A DNA stretch of 64,000 nt, from the IMG/VR virus record IMGVR_UViG_3300021137_000001, positions 124,001 to 188,000 of that record; one strand, 5' to 3'. The translations under genes were made by a program, and so were the position numbers. Of the stretch, positions 1 to 35,369 are shown piece after piece. Below the pieces are notes generated by a model. That model was not told the DNA's origin, did not search any database, and worked only from the letters and a program-made list of their open reading frames with translations. The stretch's first letter is position 1; each line of letters opens with the position of its first letter.

Positions 1-896
1 GACTCTGTATTGCATCAGATATACATTTGGAGTTTGGTAGCATTGAATTAACCAATACCTCTAATGCTGACGTGCTAATCTTAGCTGGCGATATATGTGT
101 TGCTCGTGACATTGAATTAGCTGGCAAGAATATGTACAGCAATCGTAAACGTGCTGATCGTTATATTGAATTCTTTCAGCAGGTAAGTCGTGCGTTCCCT
201 AAAGTTATTTACGTAGTGGGCAATCACGAGCACTATGATGGTGATGTTAAGTACACAAACGGCATTCTTAAACGTGCATTAGCAGAGTTTGAAAACATTC
301 ATATACTTGAAAAAGAAACATTGGAACTTGGTGACGTTACATTTATCGGTGCTACTATGTGGACTGATATGAATGGGGGCGATCCACTTACACTAGCGGG
401 CATTAAAAATGCAATGAATGACTTTAGGTGCATTGATAACAGCAACAACATGGTTCAACGTAAAGTCCCATTATACGATGAAGGTGGTGAATTTAATAGT
501 GTACGTAATGTTATTGGGTTTAAGTTTAAAGAAGAAGCAAGCAAGTTTACACCAACTGATGCTATGGATGATCACAAGCAGGCAATAGATTATATCAATC
601 ATGTTGTTACTAATGATACAACTAAGAAATATGTAGTTGTGGGACATCACGCACCAAGTATGCAAAGCTGTGCTGATAGATTTCGTGGCGACAGGATTAT
701 GAACGGCGGGTTCTATACAGAGCTCGGTGACTTTATGGCATACCGCCCTCAGATTGCCTGCTGGATTCACGGTCACACTCACGATCCATACGATTATGTC
801 ATTGGGGAAACACGTGTTGTATGTAATCCACGTGGTTATATTGGATACGAAGCACAAGCAGTTGATTTTGAGTTAAAATACATAGATGTTGCATAA
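1..896 (+). CDS. Calcineurin-like metallophosphoesterase (5' partial; true start lies just before the window)
   Basis: Frame is open from position 3 (LCIASDIHLEFG). Motifs DxH, AGD, GNHEHY, HHAP and HGHTH are present. Confidence 0.9.
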   Translation, partial: LCIASDIHLEFGSIELTNTSNADVLILAGDICVARDIELAGKNMYSNRKRADRYIEFFQQVSRAFPKVIYVVGNHEHYDGDVKYTNGILKRALAEFENIHILEKETLELGDVTFIGATMWTDMNGGDPLTLAGIKNAMNDFRCIDNSNNMVQRKVPLYDEGGEFNSVRNVIGFKFKEEASKFTPTDAMDDHKQAIDYINHVVTNDTTKKYVVVGHHAPSMQSCADRFRGDRIMNGGFYTELGDFMAYRPQIACWIHGHTHDPYDYVIGETRVVCNPRGYIGYEAQAVDFELKYIDVA

Positions 897-17977: not shown

Positions 17978-18571
17978 TTACTTGGACAAGTTATTCACCC
18001 ATTGTGTATATTGTTGGATAGCCATTTCTTTTCTGTCAGATATACGGCATATGATCTTTGGTAATGGTTTACGTAGGTTTGCTTTAAAGGCTTCGGATTT
18101 GGGCTTACGCAAATTTTCTTTAAACTCTTCGGACCGAATATATACTCCGATAATTCCTTTGTTCCACGGAATACATCCTTGTTCCCACTGACCTTTAAGA
18201 TTATCCTTATGCTCCTGCGATCTATTTTTGGCAAGATTAGACATCTTTTTCCGAGTTTCAATTGAACGATTTCCTCCATCGCCGCCGTAGCTCATATTAT
18301 ATCCGTTGCCATAATCAACGTGGGTATTATATTTGCGGATAAAGAATTCTTCCATTTCAAGTAAGGTATGTTGCTTGTCGGTGGATTGATATAGCACAGA
18401 CCAAACAAATGCCTCCCAACCATATTTACGTATAGCGGCATAGAAACGAGAATTCTTTTTAATTGAATTTCTTTTATGATCAGCACAGCGAGTAGGCCAA
18501 GAAGAATCAAATCCGATATAGGATTTACCATTTATTGTGTTAGTGGCTTTATAGATTGAATAAATATTCAT
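17978..18571 (-). CDS. GIY-YIG homing endonuclease
   Basis: SIYKATN..NGKSYIG, R..H, GYNM..GG; start reassigned to MNIYSIY. Confidence 0.9.
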   Translation of the reverse strand: MNIYSIYKATNTINGKSYIGFDSSWPTRCADHKRNSIKKNSRFYAAIRKYGWEAFVWSVLYQSTDKQHTLLEMEEFFIRKYNTHVDYGNGYNMSYGGDGGNRSIETRKKMSNLAKNRSQEHKDNLKGQWEQGCIPWNKGIIGVYIRSEEFKENLRKPKSEAFKANLRKPLPKIICRISDRKEMAIQQYTQWVNNLSK

Positions 18572-18628
18572 GCTGACATTCCTTAAAATGTTAGAGTCCT
18601 TAGATATTACCAGTATCGTGAGGGACAT
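18572..18628 (-). ncRNA. Conserved structured leader of a GIY-YIG gene (copy 1)
   Basis: Homologous to 34964-35020 with compensatory base changes. Confidence 0.7.
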
Positions 18629-18633
18629 TTTTG

Positions 18634-18662
18634 TTGACAACGTATTAAATTTCTGTTATAAT
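18634..18662 (+). promoter_or_regulatory. Sigma70-type promoter
   Basis: TTGACA-N17-TATAAT. Confidence 0.85.
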
Positions 18663-18698
18663 ACTATTTATATTATTTTACGATGAAAGAGAACTTAT

Positions 18699-18956
18699 AT
18701 GACAGCTACACAAAGTTATGATGATCATGATTATAGCAATGACAATCTCGAAGAAGCAGAATTCGGACAGCTCCATGCAATTCATAATAACATGAATCAT
18801 ATTGCCGCAGTGCAACGTGAGCTTGCTAAACAAGCATTACAACCAAGTTTAAGTGAATGCGAAGAATGTGGTGAAGATATCCCACTAGCACGTCAGTTAG
18901 CAATCCCCGGTGTTAAACTTTGCGTATTTTGTAAAGAACGTGCAGAACGACATTGA
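18699..18956 (+). CDS. TraR/DksA C4-type zinc-finger protein
   Basis: CEECGEDIPLARQLAIPGVKLCVFC. Confidence 0.92.
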   Translation: MTATQSYDDHDYSNDNLEEAEFGQLHAIHNNMNHIAAVQRELAKQALQPSLSECEECGEDIPLARQLAIPGVKLCVFCKERAERH

Positions 18957-19008: not shown

Positions 19009-19629
19009 ATGCCGAATTTAGTCCCAATGGTAGTAGAACGTACAAGTCAAGGCGAACGTGCTTATGACATTTATTCACGTCTACTTAAAGATCGTATCGT
19101 TATGTTAGATACAGATGTTAACGAGCAGACAGCAAGTTCAATCGTTGCACAGTTGCTATTTTTAGAAAGCGAAAGCCCAGAGAAAGACATTTTGTTCTAC
19201 ATTAACTCACCGGGCGGAAGCGTAACTGCTGGCTTGGCAATTTACGATACAATGCAGTTTATTAAATGCGATGTGTCGACTATTGTACTTGGACAAGCAT
19301 GTTCAATGGGTTCATTCTTGGCGCAAGCTGGTGCTAAAGGTAAGCGTATTGTATTGCCAGAAGCACGTACAATGATTCATCGAGTTAGCTCCGGCACTCC
19401 GGGCACACGTGGTAGCGTACACGTACAAGAATTACAATTCGAAGATGCTAAACGTAGCTTTGACGAATCAATGCGTATTAATCAACGCTTAACTGAATTG
19501 TATGTACGTCATAATACTGCGGGAAAAACTTACGAAGACTTATTTGAAACTATGAAGTTTGATACGTTCTTATCAGCAGACGAAGCAGTAGCATATGGTT
19601 TGGCAGATGAAGTTATTACAAAACGTTAA
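19009..19629 (+). CDS. clpP: ATP-dependent Clp protease proteolytic subunit
   Basis: [25 protein letters not shown] (Ser) and MIH (His). Confidence 0.97.
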
Positions 19630-20942
19630 TGCTTAAAGATACATTTTGCTCAAGTCCATGGTTTCATATTAGGATAGGGCCATCGGGTAAATTTTTACCT
19701 TGCCGATGGGGGTCGCATGACGATACTGGTTATAATATTGCAACAACATCTATCGCAGAATTTATGAATTCTGATATCATGCAAGGAATTAGAGCCTCTC
19801 TATTAGATGGTGACAAATTACGTATGTGCAGTAGTTGTCATTATGAAGATTCGAACAATAAAGTAAGTGGACGTCAACGCCAACTCTTAAAGAGCGTAAT
19901 TAGTATTACAAATTTTGATAAGACATTTTGTGCAAGCCCACATTATGAAATATTTGAATATAGTGCCACTAATAATGGTCATACTAATAGTTTGCCAATT
20001 GATTTACAAATTGATCTCGGCAATACTTGTAATAGTGGTTGTATTATGTGTACTCCGACTTATAGCAGTAAATTATCTAACGACTATGTTAAACTTAACA
20101 AACTAGAACCGACATTATTTAAATCCTTTTCTAAATTTAAGAATTGGGCAGATGATCCAATATTAATGGATAAGTTTGTAGCAGAATTAATTACTATTCC
20201 TAACATTAAATACATACATTTCTTGGGTGGTGAAACACTTTACTTAAAAAGTTTTTATGATATTTGTGAAAGATTAATAGAAGCAGGAGTTGCGAAGGAT
20301 ATTAATATCGGAACAACAACTAATTGTACTGTGTATTCAGAAGAATTAGAAAACATTATTAAGAATTTTAAGCATGTTCATTTGGGACTTAGTATTGAAT
20401 CTCTACATGAAGTTAATGATTATATTCGTTATCCGAGTACGATTGATTCAGTATCATCGAACATTCAGAAATTTTTGGATCTTAGAAAGCAAACTAATTT
20501 ACATTTAAGTTTGCGTATAACGCCGACTATCTTCAGCATTTATCATTTAGATACATTATTTGAATTTATGATTAATAATTCTATTATTGCAGAAAGTTGT
20601 GATATATTATACGAACCGAGTTGGTTACGAATTGAACTATTGCCACCAAATTTAATTGCTATTGCACTTGAAAAACTTAATGCAGTTATAAATAAATATC
20701 AATTAACCAATAGTAATCAGGTTATTATTAATCGCAGGCGAGATGATTTGATTGACCCAGTTATTACAAGCATACTTTTTGAATATAAACATTTCCTTGA
20801 GAATTACCAAGTACCCAATGATGTGGACGAAGAACGCCACAATTTAGTTAAATTTATTAAAGCATTCGAATCATTGCGCAATAATACAATATTGGATTAT
20901 CTCCCAGAATATGAAGAATTTTTACGACAGTACGGTTATTAA
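19629..20942 (+). CDS. Radical SAM protein with N-terminal twitch/SPASM-like domain
   Basis: CxxPW...PC...CxxC followed by CNSGCIMC and GGETL. Confidence 0.88.
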   Translation: MLKDTFCSSPWFHIRIGPSGKFLPCRWGSHDDTGYNIATTSIAEFMNSDIMQGIRASLLDGDKLRMCSSCHYEDSNNKVSGRQRQLLKSVISITNFDKTFCASPHYEIFEYSATNNGHTNSLPIDLQIDLGNTCNSGCIMCTPTYSSKLSNDYVKLNKLEPTLFKSFSKFKNWADDPILMDKFVAELITIPNIKYIHFLGGETLYLKSFYDICERLIEAGVAKDINIGTTTNCTVYSEELENIIKNFKHVHLGLSIESLHEVNDYIRYPSTIDSVSSNIQKFLDLRKQTNLHLSLRITPTIFSIYHLDTLFEFMINNSIIAESCDILYEPSWLRIELLPPNLIAIALEKLNAVINKYQLTNSNQVIINRRRDDLIDPVITSILFEYKHFLENYQVPNDVDEERHNLVKFIKAFESLRNNTILDYLPEYEEFLRQYGY

Positions 20943-23308: not shown

Positions 23309-23440
23309 ATGAAAAGAAAGAAATTAATAAGAAAAATGTATCTAGCATGTGTGCGTAAGAATACAAAGAAACAAAAGAAACTATGGCTTAAAGCATTAAA
23401 GCTAAGTTTGAAACACAAACACACTGAAGTAATTCAGTAA
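23309..23440 (+). CDS. Small highly basic protein (43 aa) immediately upstream of tmRNA
   Basis: AAGGA RBS; MKRKKLIRKMYLACVRK... Confidence 0.6.
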   Translation: MKRKKLIRKMYLACVRKNTKKQKKLWLKALKLSLKHKHTEVIQ

Positions 23441-23447
23441 AAGAAAT

Positions 23448-23783
23448 TGTTGTATAACTCTCAAAGTAAGGATTGCAAGACGCGGGGGCAGAACCCGCCA
23501 TCTCCACCAAAGATATATTAAGCAATATTGGCAAGAAACGCCATAAGTTCGGTAGTATATCTTTGATGGGGATGACTTAGATTCGATTGCGATAGATAGG
23601 ATAAAGGGCAACACGTGGGGTCACGTTAAATGCAAAAACCGTAAATGCAGAAAAAGCAAATACAACTGGTGCAGTAAAAGTATCTATGGGTCGTGGCTTC
23701 CGCTTCGGTTCACGTACTGATGCTGCTGTTTTAGCTTAGTCTAAAACAACCGGGGTAGGACTTACCTGGCAACAGAAACAACC
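23448..23783 (+). ncRNA. ssrA: Circularly permuted two-piece tmRNA (outer ends approximate)
   Basis: T-arm plus CATCTCCACCA ending 23509; hairpin spacer; GGGGATG 5' end at 23568 (G3-U70 pair); tag ORF 23647-23739; terminator follows. Confidence 0.92.
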
Positions 23784-23808
23784 AAAAAGCCCCGCAAGGG
23801 GCTTTTTT
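23784..23808 (+). terminator. Rho-independent terminator of tmRNA
   Basis: AAAAAGCCCC-GCAA-GGGGCTTTTTT. Confidence 0.9.
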
Positions 23809-32961: not shown

Positions 32962-34308
32962 ATGGGTGTACAAATGATAAACGCTATTTTAGAAGAAGTT
33001 GCAAACGAACCAAGTAAGAATGCAAAAATTGCTATCCTTACTCAGCATAAAGACAATAAAGTATTACAAGAAGTTGTTCGTTTAACCTACGACCCAACTG
33101 TAAACTTCTTCATTAAGAAAATTCCTACATACAAACAAATTGATACAACAGATATCAGTTTAACAGAAGCAATTAGTCAACTTGGTCAGTTAAGCAGCAG
33201 ACAAGTTACTGGTACTGCTGGTATTAATCATTTACAAAATATTCTAAGTAACTTACCTGAAGAAAAAGCAAAAGTAATTGCTAAAATTATTGACCGTGAC
33301 TTACGTGCGGGCTTCGGTGAGTCAACAGCAAACAAAGTATGGAAGAATTTAATTCCAGAGTTTCCATATATGCGTTGCGCACTTCCTAAAGCCGCTAAGT
33401 TAGATGAGTTTAGCTGGGTTGATGGTGTGTTTAGTCAGCTTAAAGCAGATGGTATGTTTGCCAACGTAAATCATACAGCAGATGGCGAAGTACAAATTTT
33501 AAGTCGCGCTGGTTCATTGTTTCCACAACAACACTTTGCACATTTAGTCACTGATGTACAAGCAACGTTCCCAACTAATACACAATCACATGGTGAATTG
33601 TTAATTAAACGTGATGGTGTTGTGCTTCCCAGACAGTTAGGTAACGGTATCTTAAACAAGGTACAAAAAGGTGGCGACATTGGACCAAATGACGAGATTG
33701 TTTACTTAGTTTGGGACCAAATTGCCTTAACTTCAGTCGTTTCTAAAGGTACTTACAATGTTCCGTATAAAGCTCGCTTTGCTGAATTAGCAACACAAAC
33801 ATTAACGGCAACTTGTATTACCCTAATCCCAACTGTTATTGTACATAACATGGAAGATGCACTTACACACTATCGTGAAATGCTTGCAGAAGGATTAGAA
33901 GGCACAATCATTAAAGATGCACAGGGTATTTGGAAAGATACAACAAGCAAACAACAAGTTAAAATGAAACTCGAAACAATCATTGATCTTATTATCACTG
34001 GGTTTAATGCAGGTAAAGGTAAAAATGAAGATACATTTGGTTCTATTGCTTGTCGATCAAGTGATGGCTTACTTGAAGTTAATGTAAGCGGCTTTACTGA
34101 TTCAGATAGAATCAGTATCTGGGCAAGCAAGGACGAAGTAATTGGCAAGATTATGGCAGTTAAATCTAACAGCATTATGCCACCGAGTGATAGTAATACA
34201 AGTTACTCATTATTTTTACCACGTTGCGAAGAAATTAGAGATGATAAACAAATAGCAGATGATTTACAACGTATCATCGATCAATTTGAAAGCGCAATTA
34301 AGGATTAA
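32962..34308 (+). CDS. ATP-dependent DNA ligase (T4 gp30-like)
   Basis: KADG, HGEL, VWD, EGTIIK, KMK and SLFLP motifs. Confidence 0.95.
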   Translation: MGVQMINAILEEVANEPSKNAKIAILTQHKDNKVLQEVVRLTYDPTVNFFIKKIPTYKQIDTTDISLTEAISQLGQLSSRQVTGTAGINHLQNILSNLPEEKAKVIAKIIDRDLRAGFGESTANKVWKNLIPEFPYMRCALPKAAKLDEFSWVDGVFSQLKADGMFANVNHTADGEVQILSRAGSLFPQQHFAHLVTDVQATFPTNTQSHGELLIKRDGVVLPRQLGNGILNKVQKGGDIGPNDEIVYLVWDQIALTSVVSKGTYNVPYKARFAELATQTLTATCITLIPTVIVHNMEDALTHYREMLAEGLEGTIIKDAQGIWKDTTSKQQVKMKLETIIDLIITGFNAGKGKNEDTFGSIACRSSDGLLEVNVSGFTDSDRISIWASKDEVIGKIMAVKSNSIMPPSDSNTSYSLFLPRCEEIRDDKQIADDLQRIIDQFESAIKD

Positions 34309-34963
34309 TTCTTTTCATGACACCTACGTATTTTATATTCTTGTAGGTGTCAAATTCTTCTTTTGTGACACGTAATGTTAATCCTGTTACCAGATCACGT
34401 GCGCTCACCATACGACTATTAGTGCCTGAGACTTTATTCTTACATAGGTCTGATTGAGTTTTACCATACATTCCATTACCTTCTCCTGTACGTTGATCTG
34501 AGAATTTAGCACAAACAATATCACTGTGCTTTTTGCCCAACATACCACGGGGATGATTCAGTTGGCGCACTTCTTTAAGATGTTGTTTGGTTTCAATTGA
34601 ATGTTTCTTTCCTAGCATTCCTCGAGGATGTGGTATAGTTGCCATTTGTGCTTTGCGTATAATAGATATCTTTTTCTTTGTTTCATTGGACATTACATAA
34701 CCAGAGTTACCTTCGCCACCGTCTGTTAAATTACGTAATATGCCAGTACCATTACTTTTACGCCCATACAGCGCAATAAGTTTCTTTTCAAATAAGTGTG
34801 CTTCGTACTCGAAAAGTTTGTGTGCTATTATTTGTATAAGGTCTTTATTCTTCGGAGGAATATGATTCTTACCCTTTGACCACGCACGTTTTCCTTTGCC
34901 TTTGCCAATATAATATGGAGTTAAATCTTCTCTGAGGTATGCGTAAACGTAATAAATAGACAT
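34298..34963 (-). CDS. GIY-YIG homing endonuclease with NUMOD3
   Basis: YYVYAY...YYIGKG...R, LRNLTDGGEG, GKKHS repeats; start reassigned to MSIYYVY. Confidence 0.9.
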   Translation of the reverse strand: MSIYYVYAYLREDLTPYYIGKGKGKRAWSKGKNHIPPKNKDLIQIIAHKLFEYEAHLFEKKLIALYGRKSNGTGILRNLTDGGEGNSGYVMSNETKKKISIIRKAQMATIPHPRGMLGKKHSIETKQHLKEVRQLNHPRGMLGKKHSDIVCAKFSDQRTGEGNGMYGKTQSDLCKNKVSGTNSRMVSARDLVTGLTLRVTKEEFDTYKNIKYVGVMKRINP

Positions 34964-35020
34964 GCTGGCATTGTTCCATAATGTTAGAGCTAGTGGATAC
35001 TTCAATATCGCGACTAGCAC
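34964..35020 (-). ncRNA. Conserved structured leader of a GIY-YIG gene (copy 2)
   Basis: Homologous to 18572-18628; preceded by an ATAAATA late promoter. Confidence 0.7.
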
Positions 35021-35041
35021 TTTTATTTATCTAATCTCCGA

Positions 35042-35070
35042 TTGACTTCTCCACAAATTCATAGTATAAT
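35042..35070 (+). promoter_or_regulatory. Sigma70-type promoter
   Basis: TTGACT-N17-TATAAT. Confidence 0.8.
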
Positions 35071-35075
35071 AAGTA

Positions 35076-35369
35076 ATGTTAAAATTAGTAAAACGACTAA
35101 TAGGATTATTATCAATGACTAAAAACTATAAACTAGCACAGGAAGCAAACAAAGATGTTGTGTATGGTGCGCTACAAGGGCTAATTAAAAACCCTAAACT
35201 CTGGCACACTAGTCCAGTTGGGCGCGAGTATTGTAATTTGACAGAATCGGGTCGTGAAGTCATTGTTGATTTAGTGCAGGACTTAATGCGCACTATTGAT
35301 GTGTTAGAACGCAAGGCATTAGATGAACGTGCAAAAGAAATTACATTTGAAACATTGAAGGCAAAATAA
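35076..35369 (+). CDS. Hypothetical protein (start may be 35115)
   Basis: ORF track; AGGA precedes ATG 35115. Confidence 0.7.
   Translation: MLKLVKRLIGLLSMTKNYKLAQEANKDVVYGALQGLIKNPKLWHTSPVGREYCNLTESGREVIVDLVQDLMRTIDVLERKALDERAKEITFETLKAK

Follow-up and report, generated by a model that had tools for sequence, protein, structure and literature searches.

A predicted antisense RNA cassette at the start of homing endonuclease genes in freshwater T4-like phages

The analysed window, a 64,000-nucleotide stretch (positions 124,001 to 188,000) of the IMG/VR virus record IMGVR_UViG_3300021137_000001, contains two homing endonuclease genes (HEGs) on the minus strand that are preceded by similar structured segments. 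The first gene (17978..18571, minus strand) encodes a 197-residue protein with a GIY-YIG domain (Pfam, E 9e-6; PHROG 'homing endonuclease', E 4e-30), while the second (34298..34963, minus strand) encodes a 221-residue protein with a GIY-YIG-like N-terminus and NUMOD3 repeats (Pfam NUMOD3, E 1.5e-11; PHROG 'homing endonuclease'). The two proteins share only 25% identity over 95 residues (E 0.027). The segment preceding the first gene, copy 1, runs 18626..18569 with its ATG at 18571-18569, and that preceding the second, copy 2, runs 35018..34961 with its ATG at 34963-34961, 2 nt away at each end from the coordinates of the original prediction. The composite motif CTCTAACATT-N-AATGYCAGCATG occurs exactly twice in the window, against 0.00 expected from shuffles. 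The three compensatory changes reported in the outer helix by the original prediction are correct, although pair 5 of copy 1, which it missed, is a C·A mismatch. The observation of two look-alike, covarying segments at these genes is therefore confirmed.

Regular-expression, nhmmer and covariance-model searches of the 329,321-bp genome, a complete virus record with terminal repeats assembled from freshwater metagenomes, recovered exactly nine copies, all of which precede endonuclease genes, one of them coding for an HNH enzyme. The genome, that of a T4-like jumbo phage, encodes a T4-type Gp23 capsid protein and holds about 30 endonuclease genes, of which most of those without the cassette lie on the majority strand. 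In an alignment of the nine copies 14 of 16 proposed pairs show double-sided changes and 94% of cells are paired; none of 500 shuffles reached these values, and slid controls gave 26-39% paired cells. Two pattern scans of IMG/VR, the first anchored on hairpin 1 and the second only on the linker and the CAGCATGA-N-TATTTA end, each yielded at least 120 stretches, which together represent at least about 200 contigs of uncultured freshwater T4-like phages and 179 distinct cassettes. In the second scan CTCTAA, CAGCATGA and TATTTA were fixed while the outer stem and hairpin 2 were unconstrained, and 108 of its 109 distinct hits carried hairpin 1, with 34 different outer stems. All the cassettes precede free-standing homing endonuclease genes, with downstream ORFs carrying NUMOD3 (30), several HNH families, GIY-YIG, I-TevI-type DNA-binding, TnsA-like and other domains. 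Seven further cassettes were found on short, evidently mis-binned MAG contigs, which gave no clue to the host.

Comparison with catalogued sequences, which the original prediction had proposed as a test, supports its claim that the element is uncatalogued. A scan of the window against Rfam 15 at gathering thresholds found only tmRNA models (ARAGORN found neither tmRNA nor tRNA in the window), and a permissive scan (E up to 10) of three loci carrying four copies gave no relevant hit. Megablast and blastn searches against cultured phages returned only noise at E≈1-3, and a full-text literature search for the conserved strings recovered only unrelated primers. The 'moraphage' paper (PMC12619734) concerns a different lineage.

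Read in the direction of the endonuclease, the cassette comprises a late-promoter box NATAAATA, a 5-nt spacer, hairpin 1 (a 6-bp outer stem, then C-R-C opposite a single C, then a 4-5-bp inner stem), the linker UCUA, hairpin 2 with the Shine-Dalgarno purines in its loop and 3' arm, a conserved CAGC, the start codon and a TATTTA motif. The box NATAAATA behaves as the general late-type promoter of this genome, as 47 of 70 boxes lie within 80 nt upstream of a same-strand ORF start, against about 5% expected by chance. TATTTA is the reverse complement of the late-promoter core TAAATA and is over 90% conserved in all three reading frames relative to the start codon (M-x-I-Y, M-Y-L and M-I-F-I). It also keeps its position relative to CAGC where the ATG lies upstream of CAGC, as in copy c6 and the L035, L061 and L106 types, indicating that it is a nucleotide signal and not a protein one. 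The cassette is bracketed by two face-to-face T4-type late-promoter cores, each 4-6 nt from a conserved G, which the original prediction did not recognize. The spacing is tight on both sides, with 5 nt from box to stem in 96 of 111 cassettes and 5 nt from CAGC to TATTTA in 85 of 111. Read on the other strand, the inner 8-mer is [A/T/G]ATAAATA, i.e. NATAAATA, in 77 of 87 cassettes, and is followed by a spacer ending in T and then by G, the same layout as in the sense promoter.

In copy 1 the inner late-promoter-like box AATAAATA lies at 18559..18566 on the plus strand, as the reverse complement of codons 2-4 of the endonuclease, and is followed by a 5-nt spacer and then G18572. The predicted antisense RNA (18572..18636, plus strand) comprises this G, hairpin 2' at 18573-18594 with an anti-Shine-Dalgarno CCUU loop, hairpin 1' at 18596-18626 and a U-rich tail at 18627-18636. 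The sense late-promoter box TATAAATA of copy 1 (18665..18672, minus strand) is displaced, being separated from hairpin 1 by about 38 nt and not the usual 5, while at the usual position copy 1 carries CAACAAAAA, which overlaps the -35 hexamer of a plus-strand promoter. The latter is a perfect sigma-70-type promoter (18634..18662; TTGACA, 17 nt, TATAAT; 12 of 12 consensus matches) for the downstream DksA-like gene (PHROG) at 18699-18956, and starts 8 nt after the base of hairpin 1'. In copy 2 the inner box AATAAATA lies at 34951..34958 on the plus strand, followed by the spacer GACAT and G34964, and the predicted antisense RNA (34964..35032, plus strand) comprises hairpin 2' at 34965-34987, hairpin 1' at 34989-35018 and a U-rich tail at 35019-35032. 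The sense box GATAAATA of copy 2 (35024..35031, minus strand) is 5 nt upstream of hairpin 1 and overlaps this U-rich tail, and a sigma-70-type promoter (35042..35070, plus strand; TTGACT, 17 nt, TATAAT; 11 of 12 matches) faces the downstream gene at 35076-35369.

The pattern of tolerated non-Watson-Crick pairs points to the strand on which the fold is selected, since an A·C on one strand is a G·U on the other. In the scan that left hairpin 1 unconstrained, its outer stem has 534 Watson-Crick pairs, 18 A·C and neither G·U nor transversion mismatches on the endonuclease-sense strand, spread over 34 distinct stems; the pair next to the bulges (32-49) is GC in 70, A·C in 15 and AU in 7. In an alignment of 87 cassettes in antisense orientation 96% of cells are paired (98.3% in hairpin 1'), 348 cells show double-sided changes, and G·U outnumbers A·C 99 to 20 (p 9e-14), with the A·C cells situated almost entirely at loop-closing pairs. 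The basal pairs of hairpin 2 behave similarly, being C·A or A·C in 22-25 of 84 cassettes on the sense strand, and U·G is the commonest state at one of them when read antisense. RNAalifold independently predicts both hairpins on the antisense alignment and extends hairpin 2' by C-G, U-A and an invariant G·U, formed by the conserved GCUG and UUAGAG, which accounts for the invariance of CAGC and the linker. Two bulged G residues in hairpin 1' are invariant although the search pattern did not fix them. The minimum free energies agree with this, as the antisense strand is more stable in 84 of 87 cassettes (-17.0 against -12.0 kcal/mol, p 1e-15) and in all nine copies of this genome. In copy 1 the plus strand folds at -16.8 kcal/mol (z -2.75) and the minus strand at -7.4 kcal/mol (z +0.13), no better than shuffles; in copy 2 the values are -17.9 kcal/mol (z -2.82) and -13.2 kcal/mol (z -1.93), respectively. 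Two earlier tests had not shown this asymmetry: the inner helix of the first, pattern-biased set gave none (GU 9, AC 7 at the loop-closing pair), and hairpin 2 folded in isolation slightly favored the sense strand (73 against 31), a result that was reversed once the basal pairs and the CUG/UAG extension were included. The sets used for these strand counts came from pattern scans.

The genomic contexts of the cassettes provide further clues. Cassette-bearing HEGs are mostly inverted relative to both neighbors, in 7 of 9 cases in this genome and in 77 (-,-) against 21 (+,+) in IMG/VR, and the upstream neighbor is on the opposite strand in 110 of 156 scorable cassettes. The antisense fold is preferred even where both neighbors are co-oriented with the HEG (20 against 1), so read-through from the flanks is not needed to explain it, which argues that the antisense transcript would have a promoter of its own. 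Beyond hairpin 1', on the strand of the neighbors, copies 1, 2 and 4 have strong sigma-70-type promoters for the next gene (12/12, 11/12 and 10/12 matches), and in IMG/VR such matches within 100 nt are enriched (21 of 106 against 6 of 106 in controls), albeit at variable distance. The U-tract rule for intrinsic terminators is satisfied after hairpin 1' in 82 of 87 cassettes and in the sense direction in 1 of 87. However, a simple terminator scan does not call hairpin 1', the helix of which is interrupted by bulges and separated by 2 nt from the U-run, and as the U-rich tail is also the HEG's own promoter its conservation does not by itself prove termination. In two related phages, L231 and L235 (77% and 69% ligase identity), the ligase stop overlaps the start of the homolog of the gene at 35076-35369 and there is neither an endonuclease gene nor a cassette, indicating that 34309..35075 (endonuclease gene, cassette and outward promoter) is an insertion. 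Similarly, the copy 1 cassette is absent from most of the 41 ClpP-linked relative loci searched, including L311 at 92% ClpP identity, but reappears at the corresponding position in one 89% relative, L314.

Taken together, these observations are best explained by a portable control cassette of free-standing HEGs in T4-like phages, a structured segment of about 60 nt between two opposing late-promoter cores. In this model the outer box drives the HEG mRNA, which would start at the base of hairpin 1, whereas the inner box, built from HEG codons 2-4, most likely drives a cis-antisense RNA of about 65-75 nt that would start at the G complementary to the conserved CAGC. This RNA would fold into hairpin 2' (8-10 bp, with the anti-Shine-Dalgarno sequence CUCCUU or CCUU in its loop) and hairpin 1' (6 bp, then two invariant bulged G around one pair, then 4-5 bp), and end in the U-rich stretch that is the complement of the HEG's own promoter. 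It is fully complementary to the HEG 5' UTR including the Shine-Dalgarno sequence, though the AUG itself is covered only in the subfamily whose ATG lies upstream of CAGC. It would accordingly block translation or trigger decay of the HEG mRNA and keep the nuclease low, while hairpin 1' with its U-tract would also stop antisense-direction transcription before the next gene. The family, its linkage to HEGs, the covariation, the strand of the selected fold, the positions of the boxes and the insertion status come directly from the sequence analysis, whereas firing of the inner box, termination at hairpin 1' and repression of the HEG are inferences; a search for RNA sequencing runs listed none for this uncultured, metagenomic phage. 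In addition, TAAATA and TATTTA are complementary and could instead form a closing helix in read-through RNA, which is thermodynamically possible (mean predicted probability about 0.5). Confidence is high for the family and the strand but only moderate for the mechanism, which we consider slightly more likely than not (roughly 0.55).

The original prediction, that an uncatalogued cis-regulatory RNA leader or single-stranded DNA end signal travels with free-standing endonucleases, is partly supported: the structure is conserved and covarying, travels with endonucleases of different families and is absent from Rfam 15, but its action as a leader of the endonuclease mRNA is not supported, and the 'ssDNA end signal' alternative has no support. 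In that sense-strand model hairpin 1 would be a 5'-terminal stabilizer or protein site and hairpin 2 a weak Shine-Dalgarno-occluding throttle. Alternatively, as in I-TevI, mobE and T4 e, the late-promoter box in read-through RNA would pair with UAUUUA just after the AUG and silence translation until late transcripts start inside the structure. The position of the late box, from which the mRNA would begin at the stem, and that of the Shine-Dalgarno purines in hairpin 2 are compatible with it; furthermore, the box is complementary to UAUUUA at +1 to +12 of the ORF, with a mean predicted pairing probability of about 0.5, although no covariation is possible as both partners are invariant. The same logic is documented for I-TevI, I-TevII, I-TevIII, segB and mobE (PMC2988022), and as most pairs are Watson-Crick the sense leader folds too and may also matter. 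However, the A·C bias in both hairpins, the weaker sense fold, the mean of only -2.1 kcal/mol for sense hairpin 2 and the predominantly inverted orientation, due to which the sense read-through transcripts required by the classical mechanism should be rare, make this reading unlikely. Somewhat less improbable, but still unlikely, is that the structure works on the antisense strand without a promoter of its own, as a terminator, insulator or processing structure in transcripts of the flanking operon that read through the inverted HEG, shielding the promoter of the next gene and ending the long antisense transcript. The prevailing inversion, the U-tract, the nearby sigma-70-type promoters and the possible closing helix between the two boxes favor this view. 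Against it, the antisense fold is equally favored where both neighbors run in the direction of the HEG and no flanking read-through exists on that strand, and it explains neither why TATTTA-N5-CAGC is fixed independently of the start codon and reading frame nor why the inner box matches the NATAAATA promoter consensus.

An action at the DNA level, as a single-strand hairpin, a nuclease or operator site, or a recombination cassette that shuffles HEG modules, appears more doubtful still. The sharing of the cassette by HEGs with unrelated catalytic domains does suggest module exchange at this boundary, the promoter/stem-loop (PeSL) cassettes of T4-type phages are conserved promoter/terminator motifs that mediate shuffling (PMC2839356, PMC4122927), and I-TevI binds an operator over its late promoter (PMC2988022). 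However, free covariation of the stem sequence argues against a double-strand protein site and the strict strand asymmetry of wobble pairs is the signature of an RNA fold, though a recombination role could still coexist as a by-product. Least likely is that the similarity is non-functional, left over from recent duplication or gene conversion among HEG paralogs: while the outer stem GTAGTT/AACTAC and the linker are nearly identical in many copies, the proteins behind the cassettes are as low as 25% identical or belong to different nuclease families, and this reading is already contradicted by the 34 distinct outer stems with zero transversion mismatches and the double-sided changes.

The proposed arrangement is reminiscent of the IS10/Tn10 RNA-OUT/RNA-IN system and type I toxin-antitoxin pairs such as hok/sok, in which the 5' end of the mRNA of a selfish-element nuclease or toxin is overlapped by a short, stably folded antisense RNA that is made from an opposing promoter close to the first codons and covers the ribosome-binding region. 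Relative to these, the sequence and fold of the present element are unrelated, both predicted promoters are of the T4 late type, the overlap spans the whole 5' UTR of about 55-60 nt, the putative antisense terminator tail doubles as the sense promoter, and the genes concerned are phage homing endonucleases rather than transposases or toxins. The RBS-sequestering hairpins of T-even endonuclease genes (I-TevI, I-TevII, I-TevIII, segB, Aeh1 mobE) and of T4 genes e and soc likewise place a TATAAATA-type late promoter next to an RNA structure at the translation start, are linked to HEGs and restrict nuclease expression (PMC2988022, PMC3014915). Those are single hairpins on the sense RNA that need read-through from upstream early or middle promoters, whereas here there are two hairpins with the selected fold on the antisense strand, a second, opposing promoter core, and HEGs mostly inverted relative to their neighbors. 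In ocean metagenomes, hairpins with two conserved motifs forming the stem, ten of them including TATAAATA, were noted upstream of free-standing GIY-YIG or Vsr-like endonuclease ORFs in 'fractured genes' (Dassa et al. 2009, PMC2677866); those loci are co-oriented with the split host genes, the hairpins were read as sense RBS hairpins, and they may or may not belong to the present family. The PeSL cassettes are also small, conserved, composite promoter/terminator motifs repeated in intergenic regions of T4-like genomes and associated with insertions and deletions. However, they carry sigma-70 early promoters and flank assorted small ORFs, while the present cassette carries late-promoter cores, is tied to HEGs and has a sigma-70 promoter nearby only sometimes and at variable distance, which rules out its identity with PeSLs. 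No description of an antisense RNA attached to homing endonucleases was found in the literature searched.

Homing endonucleases are the commonest selfish genes of large phages, and how they are kept harmless is known for only a handful of T-even examples. A conserved antisense-RNA module shared by unrelated nuclease families would be a new and apparently widespread answer, would add a well-supported structured RNA family to the catalogs, and would offer a compact bidirectional late-promoter/antisense switch. The case also shows that the pattern of tolerated wobble pairs can overturn a strand assignment made by eye. It is possible, though on present evidence somewhat less likely than not, that the cassettes define a previously unrecognized family of late-expressed cis-antisense small RNAs, the first RNA family specifically tied to homing endonucleases, in which the two invariant bulged G residues of hairpin 1' would mark a binding site for a conserved phage or host protein. 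Together with the two opposing late promoters, and sometimes an outward sigma-70 promoter, such an RNA would form a plug-in kit that lets endonuclease genes of unrelated nuclease families insert backwards between essential phage genes without harm, and the module would also explain how backward insertions between coupled genes are tolerated.

Examination of the whole 329-kb genome revealed that it carries about 30 homing-endonuclease-like genes, including about 23 ORFs with NUMOD3 plus further GIY-YIG ORFs, for example at 8.5, 71.4, 97.6, 103.0, 113.4, 119.2, 133.6, 177.7, 262.8, 304.9, 312.1, 314.2 and 323.5 kb. Most have a plain NATAAATA box and a very short leader in place of the cassette. 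Outside the window, at genome positions 68496-70108 (locus L005), two cassette-bearing GIY-YIG genes sit back to back and are transcribed divergently, with their promoters separated by about 280 nt. Also outside the window, at genome positions 310857-310950 on the minus strand, the sense-oriented covariance model recovered a weak hit (E 0.017) on the strand opposite to one of the genomic copies of the cassette (copy c3), reflecting the near-palindromic box-hairpin-box layout of this element. In an IMG/VR locus (L017, positions 716-802, minus strand) the promoter box and hairpin 1 are intact, but the end comprising the CAGC, the start codon and TATTTA is replaced by unrelated sequence. This looks like an orphan cassette, and is reminiscent of the endonuclease-less hairpin noted previously (PMC2677866).

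On the plus strand of the window at 18634-18662 a perfect 12/12 match to the sigma-70 promoter consensus, with a TG extension, lies in front of a gene for a DksA-like zinc-finger protein (18699-18956), which is followed by ClpP (19009-19629) and a 437-aa cysteine-rich ORF (19629-20942). In the region 35065-35078 of the plus strand the TATAAT hexamer of the sigma-70-type promoter ends only 5 nt before the annotated ATG (35076) of the downstream gene. This mRNA may be leaderless, or alternatively the gene may start at an in-frame ATG located 13 codons further downstream.

With respect to the potential host, a search of the window with the Rfam models recovered a permuted, alphaproteobacterial-type tmRNA at 23404-23786 on the plus strand, well above the gathering score (RF04321 at 91.6 bits and RF01849 at 71.4 bits), although ARAGORN reported nothing in the window. 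Such a phage-borne two-piece tmRNA might hint at the host group. Genuine cassettes were also found at seven loci (L216, L217, L220, L221, L223, L226 and L227) on contigs binned into metagenome-assembled genomes of Geobacteraceae, Nitrosarchaeum (a 49-kb contig), Thiobacillus, Bacteroidetes, Bacteroides and Erysipelotrichaceae; however, these are probably phage contigs that have been mis-binned into cellular genomes. Search patterns for the ClpP encoded in the window matched more than 600 stretches in IMG/VR, a lower bound, and the 80 loci retained from these (L310-L389) are 77-100% identical, with several lying on contigs of 300-354 kb. Thus, the phage belongs to a very large, uncultured freshwater lineage of T4-like jumbo phages.
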